Of a stretch of DNA of 64,000 nt, positions 1 through 18,000 are shown piece after piece. The DNA lies in contig BQFW01000007.1 in NCBI GenBank assembly GCA_020891255.1, positions 186,001-250,000 of the forward strand, read 5' to 3'. Every line of letters begins with the position of its first letter. Position 1 is the stretch's first letter. A program made the translations under genes and the position numbers. Under the pieces are notes generated by a model. It searched no databases and was not told where the DNA came from. It was given only the letters and a program-made list of their open reading frames with translations. The stretch comes from Entomortierella parvispora E1425 (taxonomy: Eukaryota > Fungi > Mortierellomycota).

Positions 1-3000
1 CCTCTGATTCCTCAGGCGCTCGTGCTCCTCTGCCAACTTGTGCTGAGTGAGCACCATGGCTACGGAGGCTGGAAGTGTTGGATGGTTGGGATGATGAAGA
101 TGAGGACGATGACCTTGAATTTGATTTGGGGCTCGATCCAAGAAACTCCCCCATCCTCCATCTGTGATTCATACAGGCGGAACCGTGGAAGCATCGACTA
201 CATATTACCACCCGATCATCCACGCTGCAGTCTTGACAGTGGTAAATGTCCTCGCCAGGCTTAAAGATATGTCGACAGCGATCGGGGCGGTCCTGTTGCC
301 GGTCGCCTTGAACGGGGGTATCTAGTTTGGGAGTTGGAGGCTCAGATATCGAGCCGTCTCTATCTATTTGATCCGATCCTGGTATTGTGTTCAGTGCCGA
401 GTGGCGTTTTATGGGTTTTTCCTTTGAGGGCGAAGGTCTCTGAGTTTTCGATGGTGATGACAGGGTGGATGACTTGTCTTTAAGGGCCGATGGTATCAGC
501 GGTGATGATGGTTGACGAAGGTACTCTGGTCCAAGCTGGCCCACACTGTGATACGAGCATGGGATGTCTTTGCTCCAAGATTTACTGTCCTGGCAACTGC
601 AAATTGTCCCATCATCAGCTATCTGAGCGGTTGTGCTGTGTCCGAAATGATTTTGCTGTTCAGAAAAAGAAAAAAAAAGCAGTTAACTTCCCTTCCTGGG
701 GTTACCAAAGCACCAAGAGTTGGAACCTGTAACTTACTGAGCGAAAGCAGCGCGCACAAAGAACTGAGGTTTCAGATCCATTGACGGCGCAGGTCTAGTC
801 GGATATATTTTGATAGGAAGTTCATTTTGATATTAGCGTCCAAATCAATATTTTGACGCGACAACAAAGAAGGCAAGCAATTATTGTTTTAAAAAGTACC
901 TGACAACTGTACACCATCTCCCCTGGCTTAAATGTCATTGAGCATTGCTTGCCTTTGCCAAGTCTTGAGTACGTGCGGTGGCTCTCGGCGCAATGGATGG
1001 AGCAGTGCAAAGAGTGATGAGGCTTAAGCCTCGATCGGTCCTCACATACACAGATGGATGTGCCCCAAGAGCACTGTAGGTACATGGTATGGTCTGTATG
1101 GTCGGAGGCTGTCCAATGGAAAAAATAAAGCGGCTGGTGAGAAACAAAATCATCCAAGAGGTCCTGCGGATGAAAAGAATCTCTTGACGGAATCCTAGCC
1201 ACTTACCTCTGAAACATCGCATACAGAGAACATCCGCAGGGCAGGTTTTACAGATCACATATGTTTCGCCATACGGGATAACATGTCGACATGGGGCGCC
1301 TCGCGCCAGTGGCAAGTATTCAGGTAGCTCCATCTTTGCGTTCCTGGTTGAGAACCAGTAGGAGACCAACCAGACGCGGTCACCATATGATACTTTCCAG
1401 TCCTTCCGTGTCCTGATCAGATCCTTGGCTGGTAGAATAATCCACTTTGAAGCGGTGTACATTTTGCTATCACATGCAACTGTCGGGCATCATCAAAATC
1501 TCGGTTCAGTCTAAAACTCTCTGGTATCCAAGCCAATGAACAAGCGCGAGTAGAGGGCCAGTTCTTACCTGCATTCTGCCTAGAAGACCCTTCGTGGTTA
1601 TAAAGCCATGTCCAGATCCATGCGTATTGTTGAGTATTGGCATGCAATAGATGAAGGGTCCATCCGAACTGGACGACAACTCGACTTTCCGATTCTTTGG
1701 CAATGCTTTTGAATGCGGTTCCAGTTTTACTGCCTTTTGCTACTCCCGTCGCCTGTGCTGCTCCCGATGGTACTTCAGCTGTAGCCGTCTTATTCCTAAG
1801 GTCGTGCCATAGAGTATTTCTTGGATATTAGAAGACTGAACGTAATGATGATATTAACCTTGAGAGTATATGTACCTGGATGCGTTCAGACGAACTGTCG
1901 ACACTGCCTTTACTCCAGACACTGTGCTCTTTGTCTGCAAAATTTCTGCTATGCGCCTTTCCAGTGCTGTTGCAGGAGGCTGAGATATGGCTGGTCGCTG
2001 CATCACTTCTGGAAGATTCTCATCCAAGCTTGCAACAGCTCCATCTTCCCCATCATCAGTGGGCTCTGCCGCCTTTGTCGGCAGGCGCGACAGTCTGTAG
2101 CCTTTGTTCGGATTTACCGGTCGCATGGATGAAGTTGAGCTGCTTGGTGAGATGCCTGATGTAGAAACTGATGTTGAGCCTTTGACAATCAAAGACGATA
2201 GTAGTTCTAGAAATCCGGTTGATTCGTCCTGCAACATTTCATTCAATGTCGAAAATGTTGTTGTCGCCTCCAGACTGGGTATACATTTTTCCAAGAACCT
2301 TTGGCGAATCTGCTCAGACAAACGGACAAACTGCATGTAATCCTAGTTGGACATTAATGAGATTATCGCCAGTGATTAGCATCTGACCAGTTGAAGCTTG
2401 TCCGTTACAAGTGAGGGATGCCACAAATCAATGTTCTGCCTTACTTTCATATGGCCATCCTTGTCTGATGTCTCTAGAGGGTTGGACTCTCCAGTGGCCT
2501 CTTCCTCTGCATCTAATGCATCCAATGCTTCCTCGCTGAATGTGCTCTGCCATAACTCATCCAATAAATCGATGTGATAGCTCTTGAGTGCAGAAGCGTT
2601 TGCAGTATAGTATTCCATGTATAGTCCACCTGAAGGCTCCATTGGAGAATAAGTTGCTTTCACATCCGATGCCATCGTGACTGGAAGCGACGTAGGTCGA
2701 TTCCCAACAAGACACATCTCTCGGATTTTCGGCATCAATAACTGCTTCAGATCGACGTCCAAAGGTAGAGTCAAGAATTGAACCTCAGCCATCGCCAACG
2801 CTGTCGACTGAGCCTCATTATGAATCATTGCTAGTGTGTGCCATGGGACTGGAATCGGCGTTTCGTCCAAATGCTTATTCATAGTTTCGTGATAAGTTGC
2901 ACCAGCAGTCAAGAGAATCCGCTCGCTTATAAGTGTCTGTTGTATGACCTGAGGTCGGTGGTGAGAACTGCCGTGCAATCCTCTTCCGGCATCTGACGTT

Positions 3001-4223
3001 GATGGGGGTGGAGATAGTCCAGCTGCCTTTTCTAACTGAGATAGCCCCACTGAGATATTGACGTACAGAAGGAGCCCTGGTTGTCGGAAGGAGCCAATCG
3101 AGAAAGCAGATAGTCAGTGGATGTCAATGTTATTAAGATACTGCCTCAATTATGTCTCATAGATCCATTACCATTGATGAGCTGATCATTCTCCAGTGGA
3201 GAAGCATCCTTATCGGCCACAATATCCTCTGTCCAAGACGCTAACGACTGCATTCCCTTCAAGGTTCCATCCTGTGTGTCATCCTTTTGATCCTGCAAGT
3301 CATTGGTAAGAAGGCCCTCTATACCCAAGTTCTCTGATTGCTGAGAGTCCAATTGCTCCAAAGGCTCTTGAGTTGGCGGCGGATAATAGTTGATGGCCTC
3401 AAAAAAGCGGCCTATTGTCTCTACATCCCTCTGACTGTCATTATTGCGCCAAGCCAGCAGCTGCTCCAGTCCTGCCGAGCCCGACTCCTTCTCAGACTCC
3501 TGCCCCGTCTCTCCATCTGTTTCAACAACAGCTCCATACCGGGACCACCATGACAAAATGGGTCGCCCATAGGTCGCCAAGGAAGGTTCAACCTCAGTGA
3601 CCTCTTCCACATCCTCGAGTGCAGGGCAGATTGTAGCAAGATCGGCTTGAGCATCTTTCTGGTTATCAGAAACGACGGTCAGACGAGCTGAAGTCAATGC
3701 TGTGAGTGCCAAAATGAGTCGATCGACAGGGCTAATGTTCCCATGCTCCTTGCCATGGTTTTGCGAAGAGAGATCTTGTTCTGATCCATGGGCCAATAGG
3801 GGTATCAAGTAAAGGTATCTTGGCGCCGAGGAAGAAATCAAAGTGGGGATACCATCCATGTCCGTGGCCAGTCTTTTAGTCTCCGACACAAAAGCCCATA
3901 TCCCCGTTGTTGCAGCTCCTGTACTGTCAAGATCGTCCTTGTAGAATCGCCGGTAGAGAGCTGACCAAAGAGCTTCTTGAATGTCTCTCCTGCAGGAATC
4001 TGGTTGTTCGTCGAGAGTAAGGAGAATTAGCTTTGGGAAGCAAGGCAAGGCAGGGGAAGTTTCCTTGAATAACATGGTGCAACGCATACTTACAAAACGA
4101 GACAACGACCAGGGGATTGACGATGGACTCGAGGATGGTTCGTGCCGAGTCGGGGATGGTGACAGTCGGGTTGGCCTGCTGCTGGCCAGGACGTGTTGTC
4201 TTTGCCAACTGAAATATCGTCAT
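1..4223 (-). CDS. Multi-exon GBP/atlastin-like pseudo-GTPase with helical domain and three tandem UBR-box zinc fingers; 3' end lies beyond the window edge
   Basis: ATG at 4223; exon 1 4223-4094, intron 4093-4000 (gtaagt..ccag). Further phase-compatible introns join the ORFs 3146-4105, 2376-3050, 1854-2336, 935-1462 and 822-1202. GBP-like blocks: TILESIVNPLVVVSF, TTGIWAF, DRLILALTALTS, RPILSWWSR, IGRFFEAINYYPP, INGGLL, AGATYHETM. UBR boxes: CRHVIPYGETYVICKTC..LCMRCF..H..H..CVCED..CSIH; CSMTFKPGEMVYSCQTC..LCARCF..NHFGH..CSCQD..CSYH; CRHIFKPGEDIYHCQDC..ICSRCF. Confidence 0.8.
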
Positions 4224-4703
4224 GGCGAATAGAGAGAAAAGAAGCGCACAGGCACCCGACCTGCTGCAGAGATGGACCGATGAAATGGACGGAGCGGAAT
4301 GACGAATGCCTTGCCGGAATGAATGCGATTGTAGAAAGGATGGGGGGAAGAATGGAAGGAAGGAACAGAAAAGGACATGCTATGCCCCCTCTTTTGTTTC
4401 CGTCGCCCCCTTGTGTTACAGTCCAAGGGAACGAGGTGGGTTGGTAGGGAGACAAGCAGGGGTGGGACCTCGGGATGTTGCCATGACAACGAGACATGAG
4501 CACATGGGGACATTGGAAGAGGAGAATGCATGGGTCGACAGCATGTGGCGGGTGATGCCGTTCTTGCCAATGAACAGGACATTTGGAAGAGAATAAAATG
4601 AACAAAAGGAACAAAAGGTCAAGGAGCAAAAGGGTGTATACATGTAGTTCAGGCCCAGTTGGCCGCAGACAAGGCGGGACACGGGTCGGACAGACGAAGG
4701 ATT

Positions 4704-4722
4704 CCTTTCTTCCTTCTTTCCT

Positions 4723-4770
<48 letters not shown>

Positions 4771-4785
4771 TCATTCTTTCTTTCT
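4704..4785. repeat. (CTTT)n microsatellite
   Basis: Long run of tandem cttt units, directly visible; it produces the spurious KERK/SFFL ORFs. Confidence 0.95.
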
Positions 4786-5474
4786 CTTTTCTCCTGTGCA
4801 AGATGGAAGGTGCAAGCTGGCCGTCTTGTCTTGTCTTTTGCATCAATGATTCCAGGCAGACTGGCTGTGATCCTTGACATCTCTCGCACGTGCTTGTCCA
4901 AGCTACATCCTGGATCTCTTGCTTGAATCCCGGGCCCCTTGCATCCCCCTCAGCTCCTTGCTTCCTGGTTCGAGACAAGGACGACGCGAACGGGACGCGT
5001 GCAGCCTATGGTTCCCCTGCTCTGGCGGCATTTCTTTTTCTTTTTGTGCATCGCAGTGCCCCCCTCAACAACACGCATCGAGTTGCTCACTTGCTCTCCC
5101 AGAGTCGTCCCCCTTGCTTCTGAGCAAATCCCCATGTGGAACTTTGGGCAATAATGCCAACGACTTAATGCCACCCCCCCTTCGCTCTCATTCTTTCTCT
5201 TTGCCAAGCAGTCCATAGGATCGACTCCAACAAAGCAAACATCCTTGGTTTCTCGTGGTTTATTACATTACTTTTCTTTTGTGCCTATGATATGATATGA
5301 GTTAAGATAAAATGGATACGTGGGATGAAGTATCCGTCAGATGAAAGAGATTTTTTTTCCTTCTGAGAGGCACTGTCCTCCTCCTTGCTCTGTTTTTTTC
5401 AAAAAAGAAACCTGGACTTGATTCGCCTTATTTTTTTGCTCTCTCTCTCTCTCTCTCGCTCTCTCTCTCCTTCT

Positions 5475-6062
5475 TTAAAGAAGAAGAGAGGCCACTGCTG
5501 CAACCACGACCAAGGCCGCAGTTGATCCTGCCTTCAACACGCCCATGGCAGCGTTCGTTGCCTTGGGGGTGGCGGTGGGTGTGGTCACAGTTGGCAATCC
5601 AGTGGTGGTGGCAGCGGTGGGCAAAGCCGAAGTCGTGGCTGCTGCGGTAGTCGCCGTGGGCAAGGACGCAGAAACGGACAAGGGTGGGACCGTGCTCATG
5701 ATCGTGAATTGAGCCGAGTAGCTCTGGTTGCCACCATCGACCACCAAAATGGAGTAGGTTGAACCCTGAGGAACCGTGGCTGGGACTTGGACCTGGGTCG
5801 AACCGGCCTGCGAGCAGTCCAGAGTACCAATTGCAGTTGTGTTGGGTACTTGGACTTGGAGAGTGCCGACCTGGTAGTTGAGAGTGATGGGGAAGGTGGT
5901 GTTACCGGAAACATCGTCGCAGGTGTTGGTCCAAGAGACGGTCGCAGACTGGCCAGCGGTCCACTGAGTGGCGCCGATAGGCTCAGAGAAGGACAGCAGC
6001 TGGGCAGTTGCCTGGGAGGCCAGGGCCAAGGTAGAAAGCGCAACGATAGCGAAGGACTTCAT
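5475..6062 (-). CDS. Secreted, probably GPI-anchored Ser/Thr-rich cell-surface protein (Kre9/Knh1-like N-terminal domain)
   Basis: Single 195-aa ORF: signal peptide MKSFAIVALSTLALASQATA; domain with WTAGQSATVSW, G-TYSILVVDGG and YSAQFTI; Thr/Ala-rich stalk; hydrophobic C-terminus (NAAMG..TAALVVVAAVASLLL). Confidence 0.85.
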   Translation of the reverse strand: MKSFAIVALSTLALASQATAQLLSFSEPIGATQWTAGQSATVSWTNTCDDVSGNTTFPITLNYQVGTLQVQVPNTTAIGTLDCSQAGSTQVQVPATVPQGSTYSILVVDGGNQSYSAQFTIMSTVPPLSVSASLPTATTAAATTSALPTAATTTGLPTVTTPTATPKATNAAMGVLKAGSTAALVVVAAVASLLL

Positions 6063-7418: not shown

Positions 7419-8637
7419 AGGGCCCCCTCCTCTCCAATAGCAACATTATCCTCCACCAACGAATCTCGGAACATCATTCGCTGTGCACAACGAGCAGTAA
7501 CATTTGGCTGGTTCCTCCATTCAAAAGACAAAGACTGATGGGGCTATGTCGTCACTGAGGGTCTAGGAGAGCCCAAAGGCAAGCCACATCGAGTCCCCCA
7601 GGAGTGGGCACCTGCCCAAGTTCGAATTGAGAGATTTGGATTGAAAGGATGGTAAGGTAACCCGGTGATCTCCTTAGCTGCTAAAGAGTGCAAGGACACT
7701 TGACCCTTCACACAATTGACTCACTTTGAGATTCTGCAGCTTCACGACTGCAATGACTAAGGATCGTCCCTCAGAAGGACAGGAGTGGTGTTGCTCACAA
7801 GAAATGGGCGTCGTTTTCATTTTGGTGGCAAGGGAAAATCTTTCCACTTGGTGGCAACCAAAAAGGTCACATGACGTCGGGCATTCTGTGCTGGTGGCTA
7901 TCCTTCCAGTACGGAGAACCACCCTCCCACATCGGTGACTCCTCTCCTATGTTGAGGAGTGCCATATCCACCACAGGACACTATGAACAATTGAGCACCT
8001 GCTCCCATGAAAAGAAAAGAAAAAAGAAAAGAAGAGAGAAAAAGAGATGCCCGCTTGAGCATCAAACGAAGAGGCGAACAAGCCCTTGGCACCTAGAGAG
8101 CCCTTTTGCTCTGCCTCTTTGGTGCGACAGACATGGCGGTCATGGGAGAATGCGGGGAGATGCTCGCCCAATTGCCCCTTGCACCTAGACGGTGTGGGGG
8201 GGGGGGGGAAGTAATAATTCATGAGAAGCGAGGGGGTGAGCAAGAGAGAAGGAAAGATGCACGTCCCGGAATCGCCCTTGGTTGGCTCCACCGAACTCTG
8301 TCCGCCTGGATCGATCTTGTCCGCGAGCGCGGGCATTTTCGACCTTATTTTGTTCTTTAAGAAGACAAGACCCGTCATGATTTCATGTGTCTGACACGAC
8401 CAGTATCTGTCCAGCCTAGCCTCCCTCCTTTCATCCTCCATGTCGCTCCTCGTCGTGTCCTCCTTGACCTGCCGTCGTCCTACTTCTTTGTCCACCCTTC
8501 GCTCGCCTCTCTTCTCTTCTATTTCTTCTTCTTTTCATCTCTCTTCTCATTCCCATTCATTCTTCCGTCTCAGACTCAGACTCTTCTCTTCCTCTTCCTC
8601 TCCCTTTACTTCATTCCAATCTCATTCATCCATCACA

Positions 8638-11439
8638 ATGCCATTCGACTCCAAGGTTCCCGGTGTCACCATTCTCGCCAAGGTCACCCCCGAGTACGCC
8701 CAGATCCTCACCCCCGAGGCCCTCCAGTTCGTCGCTACTCTCCACCGCTCCTTCAACCATACCCGCAAGACTCTTTTGCAGAAGCGTGTTCTCCGTCAAC
8801 AACAGATTGATCAAGGCATTCTCCCCGACTTCTTGCCTGAGACTGCCGCCATCCGTGAGGATGTCTCCTGGAGAGGTGCCATCCCCGCCCCCGGCTTGGC
8901 CGATCGTCGCGTCGAGATTACTGGACCCGTCGACCGCAAGATGGTCATCAATGCCTTGAACTCTGGTGCTGCCACCTTCATGGCCGACTTTGAAGGTACG
9001 TTCCTTTTTATAATTCATGTAGACCCTTTATTTCCTTTTCTTTCTTTCTTTCTTTCTCAACCGCTGCATGGTGGTGCCCGCAGATCCATTGACGCCCTCA
9101 AAAAGGGCAAGAGGGGCCCGAAAAGGGTGAAAAAAAAGGTCGACATGGACAGGAAATAGGAGAAGCTTTTTCTGTCGGGATCGTAGTGATTTCTGGGTGG
9201 GGACCACACGAACAAAACGAAGATTGACTGATAGCAAGGAGAAACGGAGGATGAGGTGGGAACAGCGCGTGGTGAACGTGAAGAAAAAAAAAAGTGGACA
9301 CAGTGCCGTCATATACGTTGCGTGTGATTATGTGTGTCACTCTTAGTGCATCCCCACGGACACACACGGAACACAAGAGTTTGTTTCTTGTGCATGAACA
9401 AGAATTAAGCCGACCAGAAGGAAACAAACACATCCACATGGCAGAGGACGTTCTGGAAAACTTTTGACTGGAGTCCGTGGGTGTGCGCATGAGCGAATGA
9501 CTAACAACGAGCCACTTAGTGTTTGACTCTGTTGGAGTGCTGAGCGTGAGCGTGTGAAGAGCTTGTATCCATTACCACGAGGGAGCGATGTGTCTGCTCT
9601 GCCATAAGTCCAATAAGGGAAGGTCGAGCGAGGGCACTGGCCGGGATCACCCCGCATTTTTTCAGCGAATCGGCGTCGAGTCCACCTTTTCGTTCTTTTT
9701 TTACCTCTCCCACAGAAAAGCCGACTGTGAAAAGTGCGTAAAGAGAACAAGGTCAAGAGGCAAAGTCTGTGGACCATGGGTGTGTGTGTCATCGACAATT
9801 GTGAGAGCACCTCGAACAGAGAGAGAAAGGACTCGATCGACCCGACTTTGACCGACAAGCGGGTCGTTTGTTCACTTTCTAGCAACTCTTTTTTTTTTTT
9901 TTTTTTTTTTTGGCGCTAAGAAGGAGTAGTAGAAGGCATTAGTCAAAGGGTGGTCCAATTCTTGACATCATCGATAAGACCATGCATGCTCATTCTTCAA
10001 GAAAGATGAAGAAGAAGGGAAAGGCGGGTGTATGGTGGTAGAGGTTATGCATGCACATTCATGGAAAGCAGTGGATGCGCAAAGGGAAAGAAAAGAAATT
10101 AATTCACACCGATCTTGATTTGCACGTGCTAACCTCCAACGGATCATCGTTTCCAATAGACTCTAACGCCCCCACTTGGGAGAACAACATCTCGGGTCAG
10201 ATCAACATGAAGGATGCCATCCACCAGCGCATCTCTTACACCGCCCCCAACGGCAAGCAGTACAACATCCGCAAGGACGGCAAGGTCGCCACTCTCATTG
10301 TTCGTCCCCGTGGATGGCACTTGGACGAGAAGCACGTCTTGATTGACGGCCAGGTCACCTCTGGATCTCTCTTTGACTTTGCTCTCTACTTCTTCCACAA
10401 CGCCAAAAAGTCGGTCGAGATTGGCATTGGCCCATACTTCTACCTCCCCAAGATGGAATCTCACCTCGAGGCACGTCTCTGGAACGACGTTTTCAACATG
10501 TCTCAGGATTACATCGGGATGCCCCGTGGAACCATCCGTGGAACCTGCTTGATCGAGACCATCATGGCCGCTTTCGAGATGGAGGAGTTCATCTACGAGT
10601 TGCGTGAGCACTCTTCGGGATTGAATTGCGGTCGCTGGGATTACATCTTCTCGGTCATCAAGAAGTTGCGCCAGAACCCCGCTTTTGTCTTGCCTGACCG
10701 TTCTGATGTCTCCATGACCACCCCCTTCATGGATGCCTATGTCCGTCTCTTGATCAAGACCTGCCACAAGCGTGGTGTCCACGCCATGGGAGGTATGGCC
10801 GCTCAGATCCCCATCAAAAACAACGAGGCTGCCAACAAGGCTGCTATGGAGAAGGTTTTGAACGACAAGCTGAGAGAGGTCAAGGCCGGTCACGACGGTA
10901 CCTGGGTTGCCCACCCCGATCTCGTCAAGTTGGCCCTCAAGGTCTTCAACGAGCACATGCCCCAGCCTAACCAGTTGCACGTCCGTCGCGATGATGTCCA
11001 CGTGACTGCTCAGGATTTGTTGAACACCAACGTGAAGGGAGGCAAGATCTCAGAGGCCGGTATTCGTGCCAACGTTTCGGTCGCATTGATTTACATGGAG
11101 GCGTGGTTGCGCGGCGCCGGATGTGTGCCCATTCATAACTTGATGGAGGATGCCGCCACCGCCGAGATCTCACGTTCTCAGCTCTGGCAGTGGGCCAAGC
11201 ACCACGCGAAGACTGACAAGGGCGTGACCGTCACTGCCGACTACCTCTTGAAGGTCTTGGACGAGGAGGTTGATCAGTTGGCCAAGGAGATGGGTGAGCA
11301 GCGTTTCAAGGCCTCCAAGATCTTGCAGGCCAAGAAGCACCTTGCCACTCAGATCACTGGAAAGGACTATGCCGACTTTTTGACCTCTTTGCTCTACGAG
11401 GACATTGTTGTCCTTGAGGATGTCAAGGCCAAGTTCTAA
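8638..11439 (+). CDS. MLS1: Malate synthase (glyoxylate cycle), probably peroxisomal
   Basis: Exon 1 8638-8995, intron 8996-10159, exon 2 10160-11439 join ADFE-DSNAPTW. Motifs [60 protein letters not shown]-terminal AKF resembles a PTS1 signal. Confidence 0.97.
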
Positions 11440-14400
11440 AAAAAATGTATCTCGATCGTTCCCTGTACTTTCCTTAACTCGCATTATTACACAGAATATT
11501 CATGTATAAACCCACTCTCCTCTTACGTATGGTTGCTGCATGGTCATGTTATGAACACCTGAAATGGATGTGACAGTGGATGCATGGGAAAGGTGCAAGA
11601 AAAGAAAAGAAAAGGGGGAATGGCGTCCACAGCGTAAGCGTGTCTCGTTGGCAGGCACCACAAATTGAGAGGTCAATATTTCAAGAGGGCCATTTGAGAA
11701 TCACTCTGGTTACATCCCCTACTTTCCGATTGAATTCCTTGTCAAATCTTTCAAGTTCAGCGATATGACCAAGGAAGCGGCTGATCTGTTGATGTTGGCA
11801 CCCAAGAACCACACCCCGTGGAGAACGTCTTGCTCACTGATCGCTGACCCTGGCCGGGCATGAAGTACACATGACTTCATGGGAGCGTGAGTTGACCTGT
11901 GCTCAGCCACCCGTAAATTGATCAGGACAAAACGAACTAGGAAACAAGATTGCGCGCGTCCTCTCTGGTGAAATGGTCAAATCCAATACCGACCCAATCA
12001 AACTAGACCCTTTCTATTCCCAAGATCGGCGCTCAGAGGAAACTGGATATGAAGAAGGCCTTCCCAACTGGCGATAGAGTCAAATTTAGGCTGCTTACAT
12101 CATGTGGCAGCATTCTGCAGCATGCCTTTATTTATTCTATGGTGCAAATCATCTCTCTGTCGCGAAATGAAAAAAACCGCCTCTCTCGCGACGAGTGAAA
12201 ATCTACTTTCATCGTACTTGCTATTCTAAAGCAAATACGATTTTAGGTAGAAAATTTCCTAAAATCGTAATTGCTGCGTCACCAAATCATGCCAGTGCGT
12301 TGTGGGAAAGGGAAAAAAGGATTCGGGTGATCTGCCGATTTGGCCATCCAAGGAAAACAGTCCAAAAAAAAAAAAAAAAAAAAAAAAGGTCTGGGGAATA
12401 CAAGGAGATGGGACCCAACATGGTTAAGGATCCGTTAATTTGGCCTGGCCTGCCCAGGGTTGAGATCGCGATGGGATAGAAAAAGTCAACACTAAGACAG
12501 CACAAACGTAAACAGCTCAAGGTAGAATAGAAAAGAAAAAAGTAAGTCGTGTTGAATGGACAAAGATCAAGACAGATGAGCTTCAATCGGAAGACAGTGA
12601 CCCCACATCTGAAGACAGATAACAAAACTGGACAACAAACAACAGAATAGGACGACAAGCAATACAATGAGACGACAAATAGACAACTCCACCACAGGGG
12701 GATCCAACGCAGGGCATGGTCGTTGCACGGTGGGATCCAATCATGTCGCAAGACTGCGTCCATTAATAGAAACGGAACCTCTGTGGCCCATTTCGTCACA
12801 AACAAACAACAAATGTGAATGAGGACGGCGCAGACATCCGGGCGGGCCACAACAACCTGTACTGGAGAGAAAAAGCGGGCGCAGCTCAGCACTGCATAGG
12901 AATGCCCTCAGCAGTAACACAAATCAAGGGCCATGAGAGAGTACAAGGTCAATGATTGGAAGAGAGGCTAAAGTGATTCCGCAGTGAAGGGTTGCGATCG
13001 CAGGGTAATCGGCTGCGGAGAAGAGGGGCTTAGGTGATTAAGCAGATGGATGCTCTCGTACGTTGCAGACGCCATAGCGGGTCGCAATCCCGAACCGCGC
13101 CACCATCGACGCTTGCTTGTTTGTGTGTCCTTTTGCCACAGCCAATCCTCTATCGAAAATTCTCTTTGTTGGCAAAAGTCGTAGTTTTGTAGGACTTCTT
13201 GTCCGAAAAGTTGCAAATAGACTTACGCCATTGCGCCTCATTCGCACGCCGCCCTTCGAGTAGACCACAGTAGAACGCAGGAAGTCGGTCGTACAATGAA
13301 GCTAGTCTATAAAGGACTAACTATTTCAAGTTCCCATGCGCCTCAGTGCCCTTTCGTTGGACAATCAAAAATGAAGAGTGGAACCACAGAACGCCCTTGG
13401 ATGCATATTGTGTGTTTTTGGGACAGAAAGAGTAATTAGCCTGCCTCCTTTCTTCGAGTCCAAGAGAATCACTTTCTTTATTCTTTGAGTTGATTGGCCC
13501 TTCTTTCGTTTTTGTGTAACTTGATTCTCGCTGGCAAGCAGAAAAGAGCTGATTTCCAGAGAGAACAAAAACTGATTCTCTTGGGCACACAAGAAAGGAG
13601 GGCGGCTATTATTGTCTATCTTTCCTGTTCTGCTGGCGATATAAAAGGGAGCAAGGAGAAAGAAGGCCTTTTTGCTCCTTTGCATCTCATTACTCCTTAG
13701 GCTACCCTACTACCCGTGTATTTCTCAAAAACAAAATCGACACTTTTAGCAAGGTGCGTACCTTACGTCTTGTCACCTATGCTAATATCATGACCTTGGA
13801 CATGAGGGTCATGGAGAATGCTCAGGAGATCACAGCGTGTATTCACAAACACAACATCCAACGCTCCAAACAATAGATGCTTGGGCTGTCGAAAGAACCG
13901 TAAGTTCATGACAAACCATAAATCACAAGCACAGACCATGCTGGAAAAAAAGTGTTTAGCCCAGGGCATACTGACAATTGCCTTCACAATCTAGTAGCCA
14001 AATGACCAAAGTCGCTAGAACCCAAGGCTCTACCCCTTTTTACGCTTCTCAGGAACTAGCTGAGGCGTGGTCTGTAAGTGAGAGTGACTTTAAGGGTATT
14101 GCATGCTGCACGCAAAGAATAAATGAAAGTAGTCTTGGGGCGAAATCTCACAACGCAGTCTCACCTCCCACAGAGCGATGTAGATTCCCATGATGGTAAC
14201 AATGAGCGCTGAAGTTTGTGTCCGCCTCCCTTATCACTGCCGAAAAGAAGACCTGTTCATTGATCTTTTCCTCTGTCCATTCCTCTCACCTTCAACAGAG
14301 ACAACCGACGTCATGGAGCATCTTCCCAGCTCGCACGACTACATCCTTACTGGATACAACGACAAGAGGTTGAGGACTGAGAGCGAAGAGGTATGTTCAC

Positions 14401-15056
14401 AATAGATTATCCAAGGCAATCTCCAGGTGCAAGTAGTAGCAGAACACTGAACTTGTGTTATCCTCCTTGGAGTAGACCATCTACAATGAAGACCGATCGA
14501 CTGATACTAAATGGTCTTCAGACAGCATTGGAATCCTAGCGACTCAGAGGAGAGTTGATGAAAGGTAAAAACTTCGGATTAGGGATTGGGACCACTCTGT
14601 GGTGCACCTCGGCTCTCTTTTTTTTTTTTCGACCAACAGTTCATTTTTTGGAACCGCGGTTCTGGTGATTTTTTTTTTTTTTCAGATATTTTCCTCGGTC
14701 CATTGTTTTGATCGAACGCAGCCTGAGCCTGAAATACACATCCAACCTCCCGCCTCTTTTCCTGCCGACCCCCCTCAGGGATCCCACTGCTATTGGTGAC
14801 ATTGTTTCCTCACACTTCGCTTTGAAGTCTCTGGATTCTTTTTACGGCCCTTCTGGGCTTAAATGAATTGGTCCAGGGGGAAAAAAAAATGAAGAAAAAA
14901 AATCGAGTGACAGCGTTCTTTGCAGTGAACTGGTTCGGTGCACCGGCTTTTTTCTTTTGAGAGACGCGGTGTACCGGTTCCTCTTTTAGGCTCTCCCCAA
15001 CATGCATTCCCTGTCGGGATTTATAACATCAATGCTAACCTTGGTGCCTTTAAACC

Positions 15057-18000
15057 ATGAACAGCTACTACGCCAAGCCCATGTCTCGACAGACTTCAAA
15101 CACGTCGTCAGTTAGTACCATCCAAGCTAGTGGATCGGACGATGGAGTCATCACCATTAAGGACGCCAGTGAGGACTTCAAGGTCCAATCTACTCTTCAG
15201 CAAAAGAGTATGAATGATGTGCTTCGAGTGCTTGATCTTCCCACTGACCGACGTCGTCCTGTCCAGCATTCCTTTGCTGGAGCAGAGTGCCGATTCGATC
15301 TCGAGATGCCATTGAAGCAGCTGCTTACGGTCCTTGGGCACGATAACACCACGGACCTTGCAGTTGTCCTGCTGGTCGCGTGGAGCATAGTTTTGTATCG
15401 ACTCTCTGGCGAAGACACATTCATCATTGGCATGGGCTATGTTGACGAGAATGGACTGTCAACCCAGCCAGTGCCGGTGCAATTTGATGTCTCAGCAGAG
15501 CCGAGCACATTACTGCTCATCAACAGCGTGAAACTTGCTCTTGAGGTTGCAGACCCCCAACTTTTCGTTGAGGATGACTACGCCACCATCCGAAAACCAG
15601 AGAAGACCCTCGCCTCTTTCCAAGTTGCATTCTACTCGCACAACGGAGGCCTTGCTCAACCACCACTCGACTACGTTTCCATCCAAGGCGATCTCGAGTT
15701 GCATTTGCTCCAAGGCAAGGAGGACTCCGCTTTCAGCATCCATTATGCAACCGATCTATACGACAAGGACACTGTGGAGAGATATGCAGGCTACCTCAGG
15801 GTGGTGTTGCTCAACATGGTTGCCTACAGTACTCATCCAGTTTCCTCATTCAACATCATATCCTCAACCGAGAAAAGGTTGCTTCTGGAGAAGTGGAATG
15901 AAACGACCGTAGAGTACCCTGAAGATCGATGCATTCAACATCTTTATGAAGACCAGGTGGACAAGTCACCCAACGCCATTGCTGTCATCGAAGGAGAGAA
16001 GACATTCACCTTTCTCGAGCTGAATGCCATTGCCGATCGCTTCGCTTGCCAGCTTGTCGATGCCGGTGTGAAGCACGGGGACTTTATTGCTATGCTTCTC
16101 GAGAGATCTATCGAGCTAATCGCCGCCCAGATCGCCGCGCTCAAGGTCGGAGCCGCTTATGTACCCATGGATTCCAAGGCTCCCGTAGAACGGCAAGCAT
16201 TTATCATAAAGGACAGCTCTGCTACGCTTGTCGTCACCGATACCAAAACTGAGGTCCCGTTTAAGCTGCAGTGCCCGCTACTTCGCTTTGGTAGGTCACA
16301 CGAGGTTACCAATTCTTTCTGCTCATAAACCAACTCGCTATTAACTAACTTCAATTTCCTACTATCCTACTCAACGGCAGACCTGGCCGCGCTCACCAGC
16401 ATGGGTGCTAATCACATCCATGGCAACATGGAAAGATCTACCCTCGATACAGCCTATGTCATGTACACCTCTGGCTCTACCGGTCTTCCGAAGGGTGTCA
16501 TGGTTTCTCATCGTGGCATCGCCCGTCTCACTAACAACAATGGATGGTTCGACGTTGGGCCAGGAGATCGCGTGGCGTTTGCTTCCAACACTGCCTTCGA
16601 TCTGAGCACGTTAGATGTCTGGACACCGCTGCTGAATGGTGGTTGCGTAGTTATTATCGACCAGGACACCCTCTTGAATGCCCATCAGCTGGCGGCCGCA
16701 ATGGAGCGACATCAAATCAACGCTCTGCAATTGCCAACAGCGGTCTTCCACCAATACGCGTTTGTCATTGGGTCTGCCTTGTCCAGGCTGAAATATCTCT
16801 TGTTCGCAGGAGAGCAGGGATTGATCGAGGCCTGCACAGAGGTGCTTCGGCATGGTGGACCAGTTCGTCTCATCAATGCTTACGGACCAACAGAGACCGT
16901 GTACTGCACATCATACTCAGTCACCGATGCTCTCAGTCAGTCGGACCTTCTGCCCATTGGAAGGCCCATCAACAACACGCGGTTGTACGTGCTTGACAAG
17001 TATCGCAACCCGGTGCCAGTGGGTGTCATCGGCGAGTTGTATGTCGCTGGACCTGGCGTGGCCAATGGATATCTCAACCGACCAGACCTCACTGCTGAGC
17101 GATTCCTCCCTGATCCTTTCAGCAACAAGCCTCATACGCTAATGTACAAGACCGGCGATCTTGTCCGCTATCTTCCTGATGGCAACTTGGTCTATATGGG
17201 CCGCACCGACTTCCAAGTCAAGATCCGTGGATTCCGAATCGAGATTGGCGAGATTGAGGCACGCCTTGCTGAGCACCCTCAAGTTCGTGAAGTTGTTGTG
17301 CTGGCAGTTGGAGAGAGCGGTGATAAGCGATTAGTTGCCTACGTCGTCGCTACGCCCATTGATGACTTTGCCAGTACCCTTCGCAATTATCTTATGGCTA
17401 GCTTACCAGAGTACATGGTTCCATCGGCATTTGTATGTATGGATGTGATGCCACTGACCAACAACGGCAAGGTCGATCGTCGTGCTCTCCCTGAGCCGGA
17501 CAGCACGTCGTTTGTCAGTGAGGATTACGTTGCCCCTCAAGGCTCTACTGAAGTCGCACTGGCTGCAATCTGGTGCGAGTTGCTCAAGATCGGGAGAGTT
17601 GGCCGCCATGACAACTTCTTTATGTTGGGAGGACATTCTCTTCTCGCTGTCCGCATGATGAATCGTGTGTCCGCTCTTGGAGTACAGTTGCCGTTATCCA
17701 CGCTGTTCTCCGCTCCCACTCTCTCTGCTTTTGCAGACGTGATCAACACCAACATCTCGAAGGACGATTTGTCGCACTTGAACATTTCTCCTATCTCGAG
17801 GGATGGCCCCCTGGAGTTATCATTTGCCCAACAACGGCTGTGGTTTCTTGCGCAGCTGGAAGGTGTGAGCGTTACCTACCATATCCCTATGGCTTTCTCT
17901 CTGCATGGTACACTCAACATTCCGGCCTTGGAAAAGGCATTTGACAGCCTGTTTGCTAGGCACGAATCCCTTCGCTCCATTTTTGTCGCCCTCGATGGCC

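Follow-up and report, generated by a model that had tools for sequence, protein, structure and literature searches.

The window analysed here is a stretch of 64,000 nucleotides from the fungus Entomortierella parvispora E1425 (GCA_020891255.1, contig BQFW01000007.1, positions 186,001 to 250,000 of the forward strand). Its first 4,223 positions carry part of a minus-strand gene in which a domain that resembles guanylate-binding proteins (GBPs) is joined, through a linker, to an array of UBR-type zinc fingers. The gene starts with an ATG at 4223, with an in-frame stop codon upstream and no other ATG between the two, and its open frame leaves the window at base 1 after 1,159 codons. Nine exons lie in the window; they are separated by introns of 80-105 nucleotides (nt), all of which begin with GT and end with AG. 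All coordinates given below for this gene refer to the minus strand.

With the large exon as query, phmmer was run exhaustively against 1.84 billion representative proteins and found only two real homologous clusters. The first (P0001) is a fragment with 82% identity from soil or peat metagenome contigs, and its locus is called L002 in the following. The second (P0002) is 39% identical and consists of the 548 amino acid (aa) ‘hypothetical protein BGZ83_008775’ of Gryganskiella cystojenkinii (Mortierellaceae); its locus, L001, covers 10001-16395 of JAAAIG010000056.1 (GCA_015852425.1). Another phmmer match (P0003) was rejected as a repeat artefact, and a scan of metagenomes for further homologues added no new contig. 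A homology search under a length filter, with P0002 or the family alignment as query, gave P0002 alone. Along its whole length, the window model can be aligned collinearly with L002, to which it has 84% aa identity, and with L001. L002 contains the complete gene, which has 11 exons with the same junctions as in the window, encodes 1,785 aa and ends with a stop codon at 9651-9653; L001 is collinear with this full model up to its own stop. Intron 5 of L002 (6023-6129) is the sole GC-AG intron, with the donor G/GCAAGT at the place where the window has GTAAGA.

Exon 1 (4094..4223, aa 1-44, donor TTTT/GTAAGT) encodes the N-terminus MTIFQLAKTTRPGQQQ, which is kept in L002 and P0002, and includes a strand-like segment, PLVVVSF, that was aligned with GBP beta1. 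Exon 2 (3172..3999, aa 44-320) would provide the body of the GBP-like large-G-like domain, and exon 3 (2445..3076, aa 320-530) the end of this domain (INGLLLYVN) together with predicted helices. An earlier note on this DNA had compared short strings of the protein with strings of human GBP1. These strings are present in the spliced model: TILESIVNPLVVVSF (aa 29-43), YSCRRDIQE (aa 44-52, its first eight residues at about 3999-3977), TTGIWAF (aa 74-80, 3910-3890), DRLILALTALTS (aa 136-147, 3724-3689), RPILSWWSR (aa 189-197, 3565-3539), IGRFFEAINYY (aa 239-249, 3415-3383) and, in exon 3, ATYHETM (aa 379-385, 2900-2880). One of them had been quoted with a wrong letter, ‘INGGLL’ being present as INGLLL (aa 318-323). 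The GBP1 strings quoted in the note, for their part, were found almost verbatim in mammalian GBPs (P0046). Exon 4 (1876..2342, aa 531-686) connects the GBP-like half with the half that carries the zinc fingers. Its helical stretch (NEMLQDESTGFLELLSS) is conserved and gives way to a linker rich in Ser and Pro; the exon is conserved in L002 and L001 and matched no Pfam family.

The remaining exons encode motifs that resemble MIR repeats and the UBR boxes. Exon 5 (1569..1795, aa 686-762) contains the first MIR-like motif (VVVQFGWTLHLLHANTQQYAWIW, 1680-1588). An alternative acceptor for this exon at 1819, which would leave an intron of 56 nt, was dropped in favour of 1795 because the eight codons that it would add are not conserved in L002. 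Exon 6 (1207..1479, aa 762-853) carries the second MIR-like motif and begins UBR box 1, whose two halves are divided between this exon and exon 7 (900..1108, aa 853-922); box 2 starts in exon 7 as well. The middle of box 2 (TCAVNGSETSVLCARCFRS) is encoded by the short exon 8 (738..794, aa 923-941), which is the same exon in L002. Exon 9 (1..655, from aa 942 to at least aa 1159) is cut by the window edge; it completes box 2, continues with a spacer of low conservation and breaks off within box 3, after its first half.

As read from L002, the full gene has six UBR boxes (aa 830-896, 913-982, 1073-1243, 1257-1328, 1386-1477 and 1489-1568), of which the window contains the first two and the first half of the third. 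The earlier note had described three tandem UBR boxes; it was right about their identity, which both Pfam and the PDB support, but not about their number, which is six, nor did it include the weak MIR-like flanks. In the window, box 1 (aa 825-891, 1291-993 across an intron) is a Pfam zf-UBR box with the full Cys/His pattern, box 2 (aa 908-977, 944-548 across two introns) is complete, and the first half of box 3 (CRHIFKPGEDIYHCQDCSVDDRVVICSRCFHGSACMNHRWRM, 277-143) matches zf-UBR (PF02207) at 7.9e-09, scoring 35.9 bits where the cut-off is 25.2. In L002, the exon that encodes boxes 3 and 4 reaches 80.5 bits (E=1e-22), and its box 3 matches UBR2/UBR1 boxes of known structure in the PDB at about 4e-08. 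In boxes 1, 2, 5 and 6, the halves on either side of an intron match complementary positions of the zf-UBR profile; exon 6, for example, covers profile positions 2-32 and exon 7 positions 33-69. The full Cys/His zinc-ligand pattern is found in boxes 1, 2, 3 and 5; in boxes 4 and 6 its last Cys/His pair is missing. Box 3 has a Cys at the position of UBR2 H133. It also carries a low-complexity, Ser/acidic-rich insert of 108 residues between its HRWRM strand and its CDCGD loop (aa 1115-1225 in L002, nt about 7430-7760; 140-1 in the window), which is present in Gryganskiella as well. A similar insert of 36 residues is found in box 5.

MIR-like motifs, such as LYLHSHPYRSINHQDHNEVSGYRYHNQDNDW, lie on either side of the six-box array (1680-1349 in the window, 9200-9650 in L002), and PMT2 MIR domains in the PDB give E about 2.5 with them. 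The C-terminus is highly conserved, its last 60 residues being almost identical in L002 and Gryganskiella, and ends in ...WLRQQILSDE without a CaaX motif.

The gene is under purifying selection. When the window was compared with L002 (dS about 0.9), dN/dS was 0.09 in exon 2, 0.09 in exon 3, 0.15 in the linker exon 4, 0.03 in the MIR-like exons together with boxes 1-2, and 0.35 in the spacer before box 3. Genomic contigs of a further relative, from the public run X4 (same species label), cover window positions 751-1803. In exons 5-8 they are less than 95% alike (five of the six pieces less than 90%) and differ mainly in every third base, and other sequence takes the place of the introns. The MIR/UBR part is therefore carried by one further lineage at the least. 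At least three lineages of Mortierellaceae have kept the domain combination, which so far has been seen only in this family.

The GBP-like part and the UBR boxes probably belong to one intron-containing gene, as the earlier note had proposed. The exon phases agree at every junction in both the window and L002, including that between exons 4 and 5. Moreover, window exon 5 has no in-frame ATG from the upstream stop to its donor; as it is constrained coding sequence without an ATG of its own, it should be spliced to an upstream exon. We weighed this against a model of two neighbouring genes, one for a GBP-like protein of 550-690 aa and one for a separate MIR/UBR protein, in which the joining of exons would have produced the fusion artificially. 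Such a model agrees with the annotation that is public for the Gryganskiella locus, in which a product of 548 aa and another of 683 aa are listed, the latter with zf-UBR. It could also draw on the in-frame ATG within putative intron 4 of L001 and on the exon 4 donor of the window, where read-through leads to a stop after eight codons. However, the 548-aa product of L001 ends by read-through into intron 3, and the unannotated 2.3 kb between the two products encode exons 4-9 with 49-78% identity, so that the annotation is incomplete and does not provide evidence for two genes. Two separate genes would also leave the codon-level constraint on an exon 5 without an ATG after the upstream stop, the matching phases at all junctions and the dN/dS of 0.15 in the linker exon unaccounted for, and we thus consider this model improbable. 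The split annotation of L001 may hide the family from searches that are based on proteomes.

The kinship of the N-terminal half was assessed against a reference set of GBPs. A pattern scan of viral contigs led to the locus L007, from which 120 listed homologues were obtained, 66 of them non-redundant. This locus (2341-5415, plus strand, of IMGVR_UViG_GVMAG-S-1017244-26_000001) lies in a giant-virus metagenome-assembled genome and encodes a GBP of 1,025 aa (Pfam GBP 3e-62, GBP_C 1.6e-06). A three-sequence profile of the window-gene family served as hhalign query. At a lower posterior threshold, one collinear alignment was obtained between aa 16-449 and GBP positions 14-421, which reproduces the order of blocks that the earlier note had read from the strings. 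Its Sum_probs of 166 compares with 65+-26 for column shuffles and 88+-28 for shuffles of 25-column blocks, and none of the 200 shuffles (100 of each kind) reached the real value. The best local match to the 66 GBPs, between aa 337-423 and GBP 317-388 (P=0.012), includes ATYHETM. Against a single GBP, hhalign was negative (E=0.25), though in register. A result from hhalign with the -glob option was discarded, as only the sequence ends were aligned.

Two further approaches pointed to the same family. When a GBP HMM of our own was used in hmmsearch with filters off, the three homologues scored above 98-100% of their own shuffles in the same register, with scores of 0.3-3.8 bits. In the ESM Atlas, the neighbours of P0002, used whole or as residues 1-345, were almost all GBP, RHD3/Sey1 or SMG8/9 proteins (scores 0.92-0.93), and for residues 1-345 all of the top ten fell into one clan. 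The low-confidence secondary structure from AlphaFold has a beta-alpha order followed by a helical region, with exon 3 helical. From these comparisons, a GB1/RHD3-type origin of the N-terminal half is likely, and the kinship to GBPs is above chance but weak.

A number of results weigh against this assignment and against the MIR assignment made above. No Pfam GBP family (PF02263, PF05879) matched P0002, P0001, residues 1-345 of P0002 or the window exons at E<=10; a PDB profile search with the GBP-like half found nothing, and BLASTP against a mammalian GBP gave an alignment out of register with E=1.7. The hhalign probability was only 3-5%, and the local score was reached by about 2 of 100 column shuffles. 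The ESM recognition value of 1977 lies below the tool's mark of 2300 and is weak evidence, for which reason the ESM neighbours are a lead and not a proof. In a calibration of the ESM Atlas, one third of shuffled proteins also gave ten matches of the same clan, and exon 2 alone, searched against all clusters, gave unrelated matches and no GBP neighbours. AlphaFold, with an alignment restricted to the three homologues to avoid circularity, reached a pLDDT of 33 for the whole of P0002 and of 37 for its residues 1-372, too low for a usable model. For the MIR-like motifs, Pfam MIR (PF02815) stayed below its gathering threshold (13.1 bits versus 25.6, E=0.09).

Much of this would be expected if the N-terminal half were a lineage-specific domain unrelated to G domains that resembles GBPs by chance, so that the gene would consist of an orphan domain and a MIR/UBR array; the restriction to two related clusters among the 1.84 billion representatives would fit such a domain, too. 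Against a chance resemblance stands the agreement of three methods on a single family, in the same register, when that family had been named beforehand. The order of the blocks also matters, as none of the 100 block shuffles reached the real Sum_probs, and the low-confidence secondary structure shows beta and alpha elements in the order expected of a G domain, with helices after them, as in GBP and Sey1. An unrelated domain is thus rather unlikely, but it is an explanation to be reckoned with.

The motifs required for recognising a nucleotide as GBPs do would be missing from such a domain. Walker A, DxxG and RD are absent at the GBP-aligned positions in all three homologues (window model, L002 and P0002), and among the reference GBPs Walker A is present in 64 of 66 and xxRD in 63 of 66. 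At the G1 position, the P-loop GxxxxGK[ST] is replaced by SFYSC(R/K)R(D/P), which reads SFYSCRRD in the window; the G3 position of DxxG (DTEG) reads YLYLIP (3817-3800), and at the G4 position (T/V)(L/V)RD is replaced by SWWSRY, where only the Arg is kept. The replaced P-loop and the missing DTEG of the earlier note were thus borne out. Because none of the three motifs occurs in any of the three homologues, the domain is probably GTP-blind if its GB1/RHD3 origin holds.

The binding pockets of the UBR boxes can be compared with that of UBR2, in which Asp150 holds the alpha-amino group of the ligand and Asp153 the arginine side chain, and where the mutation D153A abolishes binding (PMC10687169). 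The corresponding loop of box 3 reads CDCGD in L002 and L001 (part of the box beyond the window edge). The other boxes have CVCED (box 1), CSCQD (box 2), CHCGS (box 4), CGCGE (box 5) and CACGK (box 6). The equivalents of D150 and D153 are both kept in box 3 only, and the other five have V, S, H, G or A at D150. Because of this distribution, only box 3 resembles a canonical type-1 reader of N-degrons. The multivalent N-terminus sensor that the earlier note had suggested is not supported. Pfam recognised no RING, HECT or U-box family in any of the window and L002 exons that were scanned.

Upstream of the gene, at 5475-6062 on the minus strand, lies a neighbour of 195 aa that has a signal-like sequence at its N-terminus, an Ig-like domain of the Kre9/KNH type (Pfam 2.4e-08) and a tail rich in Ser, Thr and Ala; it is probably a cell-wall or GPI-type protein. 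The 1.25-kb upstream region contains a (CTTT)n microsatellite with 20.5 copies (4705-4785) and a (CT)n repeat with 15.5 copies (5439-5469).

The explanation that we favour, and that we hold to be reasonably probable as a whole, is that of one gene for a protein of about 1,785 aa in which a degenerate GB1/RHD3-type G domain is followed by a linker and a MIR-flanked array of six UBR boxes. The first part would be a large G domain of the GBP/atlastin/Sey1 kind from which the P-loop, the switch II motif DxxG and the RD motif for guanine specificity have disappeared, and its tail of helices would correspond to the start of the GBP stalk, with which it was aligned. The conserved helical stretch and the presumably disordered linker would then lead to the MIR-like motifs and the six zinc fingers between them. 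Such a protein could act as a non-catalytic scaffold or adaptor. Box 3, with the pocket aspartates of UBR1/2, could bind basic (type-1) protein N-termini, and the five divergent boxes might bind other peptide ligands or have a structural role. The GTP-blind G-like domain and its helices may serve nucleotide-independent dimerisation or partner binding, as in other pseudoGTPases.

This protein shares features with several known systems. With GBPs, atlastins and Sey1/RHD3 it has in common the order of blocks, which runs from an N-terminal hairpin/beta1 through a T-x-G-I-W switch I, a D-x-x-I-x-A-L helix, an F-x-W-x-x-R strand and a Y-V-N-A-I helix to the first stalk helix; it also shares with them a helical region after the G-like domain and the language-model neighbours. 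Unlike these proteins, it lacks a P-loop, DxxG, RD, a CaaX motif and a transmembrane anchor, and it carries the UBR array, whereas zf-UBR was found in none of the 120 listed GBP homologues (Pfam strings). SMG8/SMG9 are comparable in so far as Smg8_Smg9 clusters were among the ESM neighbours. They differ in their partners, which belong to the SMG1 kinase complex, and have no zinc-finger array. Other pseudoGTPases, such as AAGAB (PMC12490416), are a further parallel, as their G-fold domains, like those of SMG8/SMG9, are thought to be nucleotide-independent or degenerate interaction modules.

On the side of the zinc fingers, the likeness to UBR1/UBR2 lies in box 3, where the equivalents of D118, D150 and D153 are kept together with the zinc ligands. 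However, the window gene has six boxes instead of one, an insert of 108 residues in box 3 and five boxes that are non-acidic at D150, and neither a RING nor a ClpS-like N-domain nor any other part of an E3 could be recognised in it. UBR4, UBR7 and the ZZ domain of p62/SQSTM1 bind protein termini without a classical RING beside the box, and by analogy this type would be the closest functional counterpart of the proposed scaffold. p62 couples N-degron binding with self-association. Asp129 of its ZZ domain is mentioned in PMC10687169. The architectures are unrelated, though, and no PB1, PHD or hemi-RING was found in the window gene. The flanking motifs resemble the MIR repeats of PMT mannosyltransferases, SDF2 and IP3R/RyR, but they are sub-threshold and flank an insertion of about 750 aa with the six boxes.

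Two more far-reaching functions can be imagined on this basis. In one, a GBP-like module that needs no nucleotide to oligomerise or to bind membranes would be combined with six terminus-reading fingers into an E3-free N-degron sensor of fungi that is more p62-like than UBR1-like. Assembly or sequestration would then be set off by N-termini that are exposed or newly cut, for instance after protease activity or on an endobacterium. We regard this as very unlikely. The other is the suggestion of the earlier note that the protein is a GBP-style factor of cell-autonomous immunity, which would coat or tag endobacteria while several of its boxes read exposed N-termini. The note describes the lineage, here Mortierellaceae, as one known to host endobacteria, and P0002 comes from Gryganskiella cystojenkinii; a relation to GBPs is plausible, and box 3 has the pocket residues for N-degrons. 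Coating by GBPs, however, depends on GTP-driven polymerisation and, in the case of GBP1/2/5, on a CaaX lipid anchor. As all GTP-binding motifs are missing and the C-terminus (...ILSDE) has no CaaX tail, an immune coat of this kind is hardly to be expected; in addition, five of the six boxes lack the D150 equivalent and the neighbouring genes give no pointer to immunity. Of all the explanations considered here, we give this one the least credence.

UBR boxes are known as single readers within large E3 ligases. In the literature searched, we found no paper that joins a UBR box with a guanylate-binding protein or with a MIR domain, or that describes tandem or multiple UBR boxes, which is in line with the statement of the earlier note that no protein of such an architecture was described. 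While the modules are each of known kinds, their combination and the six-fold array are apparently new, at least to us. The narrow distribution, with two clusters among the proteins searched, limits the general reach of the finding, which is a compact case of domain repurposing. With a GTP-blind GBP-like domain attached to a six-box array without a recognisable ligase, both modules would be put to a new use. If the N-terminal fold is confirmed, it would represent a pseudoGTPase branch in the GBP/atlastin class and the first one that is fused to readers of the ubiquitin system; and if box 3 binds N-degrons, the protein would be a candidate for a non-degradative or adaptor-type N-recognin in early-diverging fungi.

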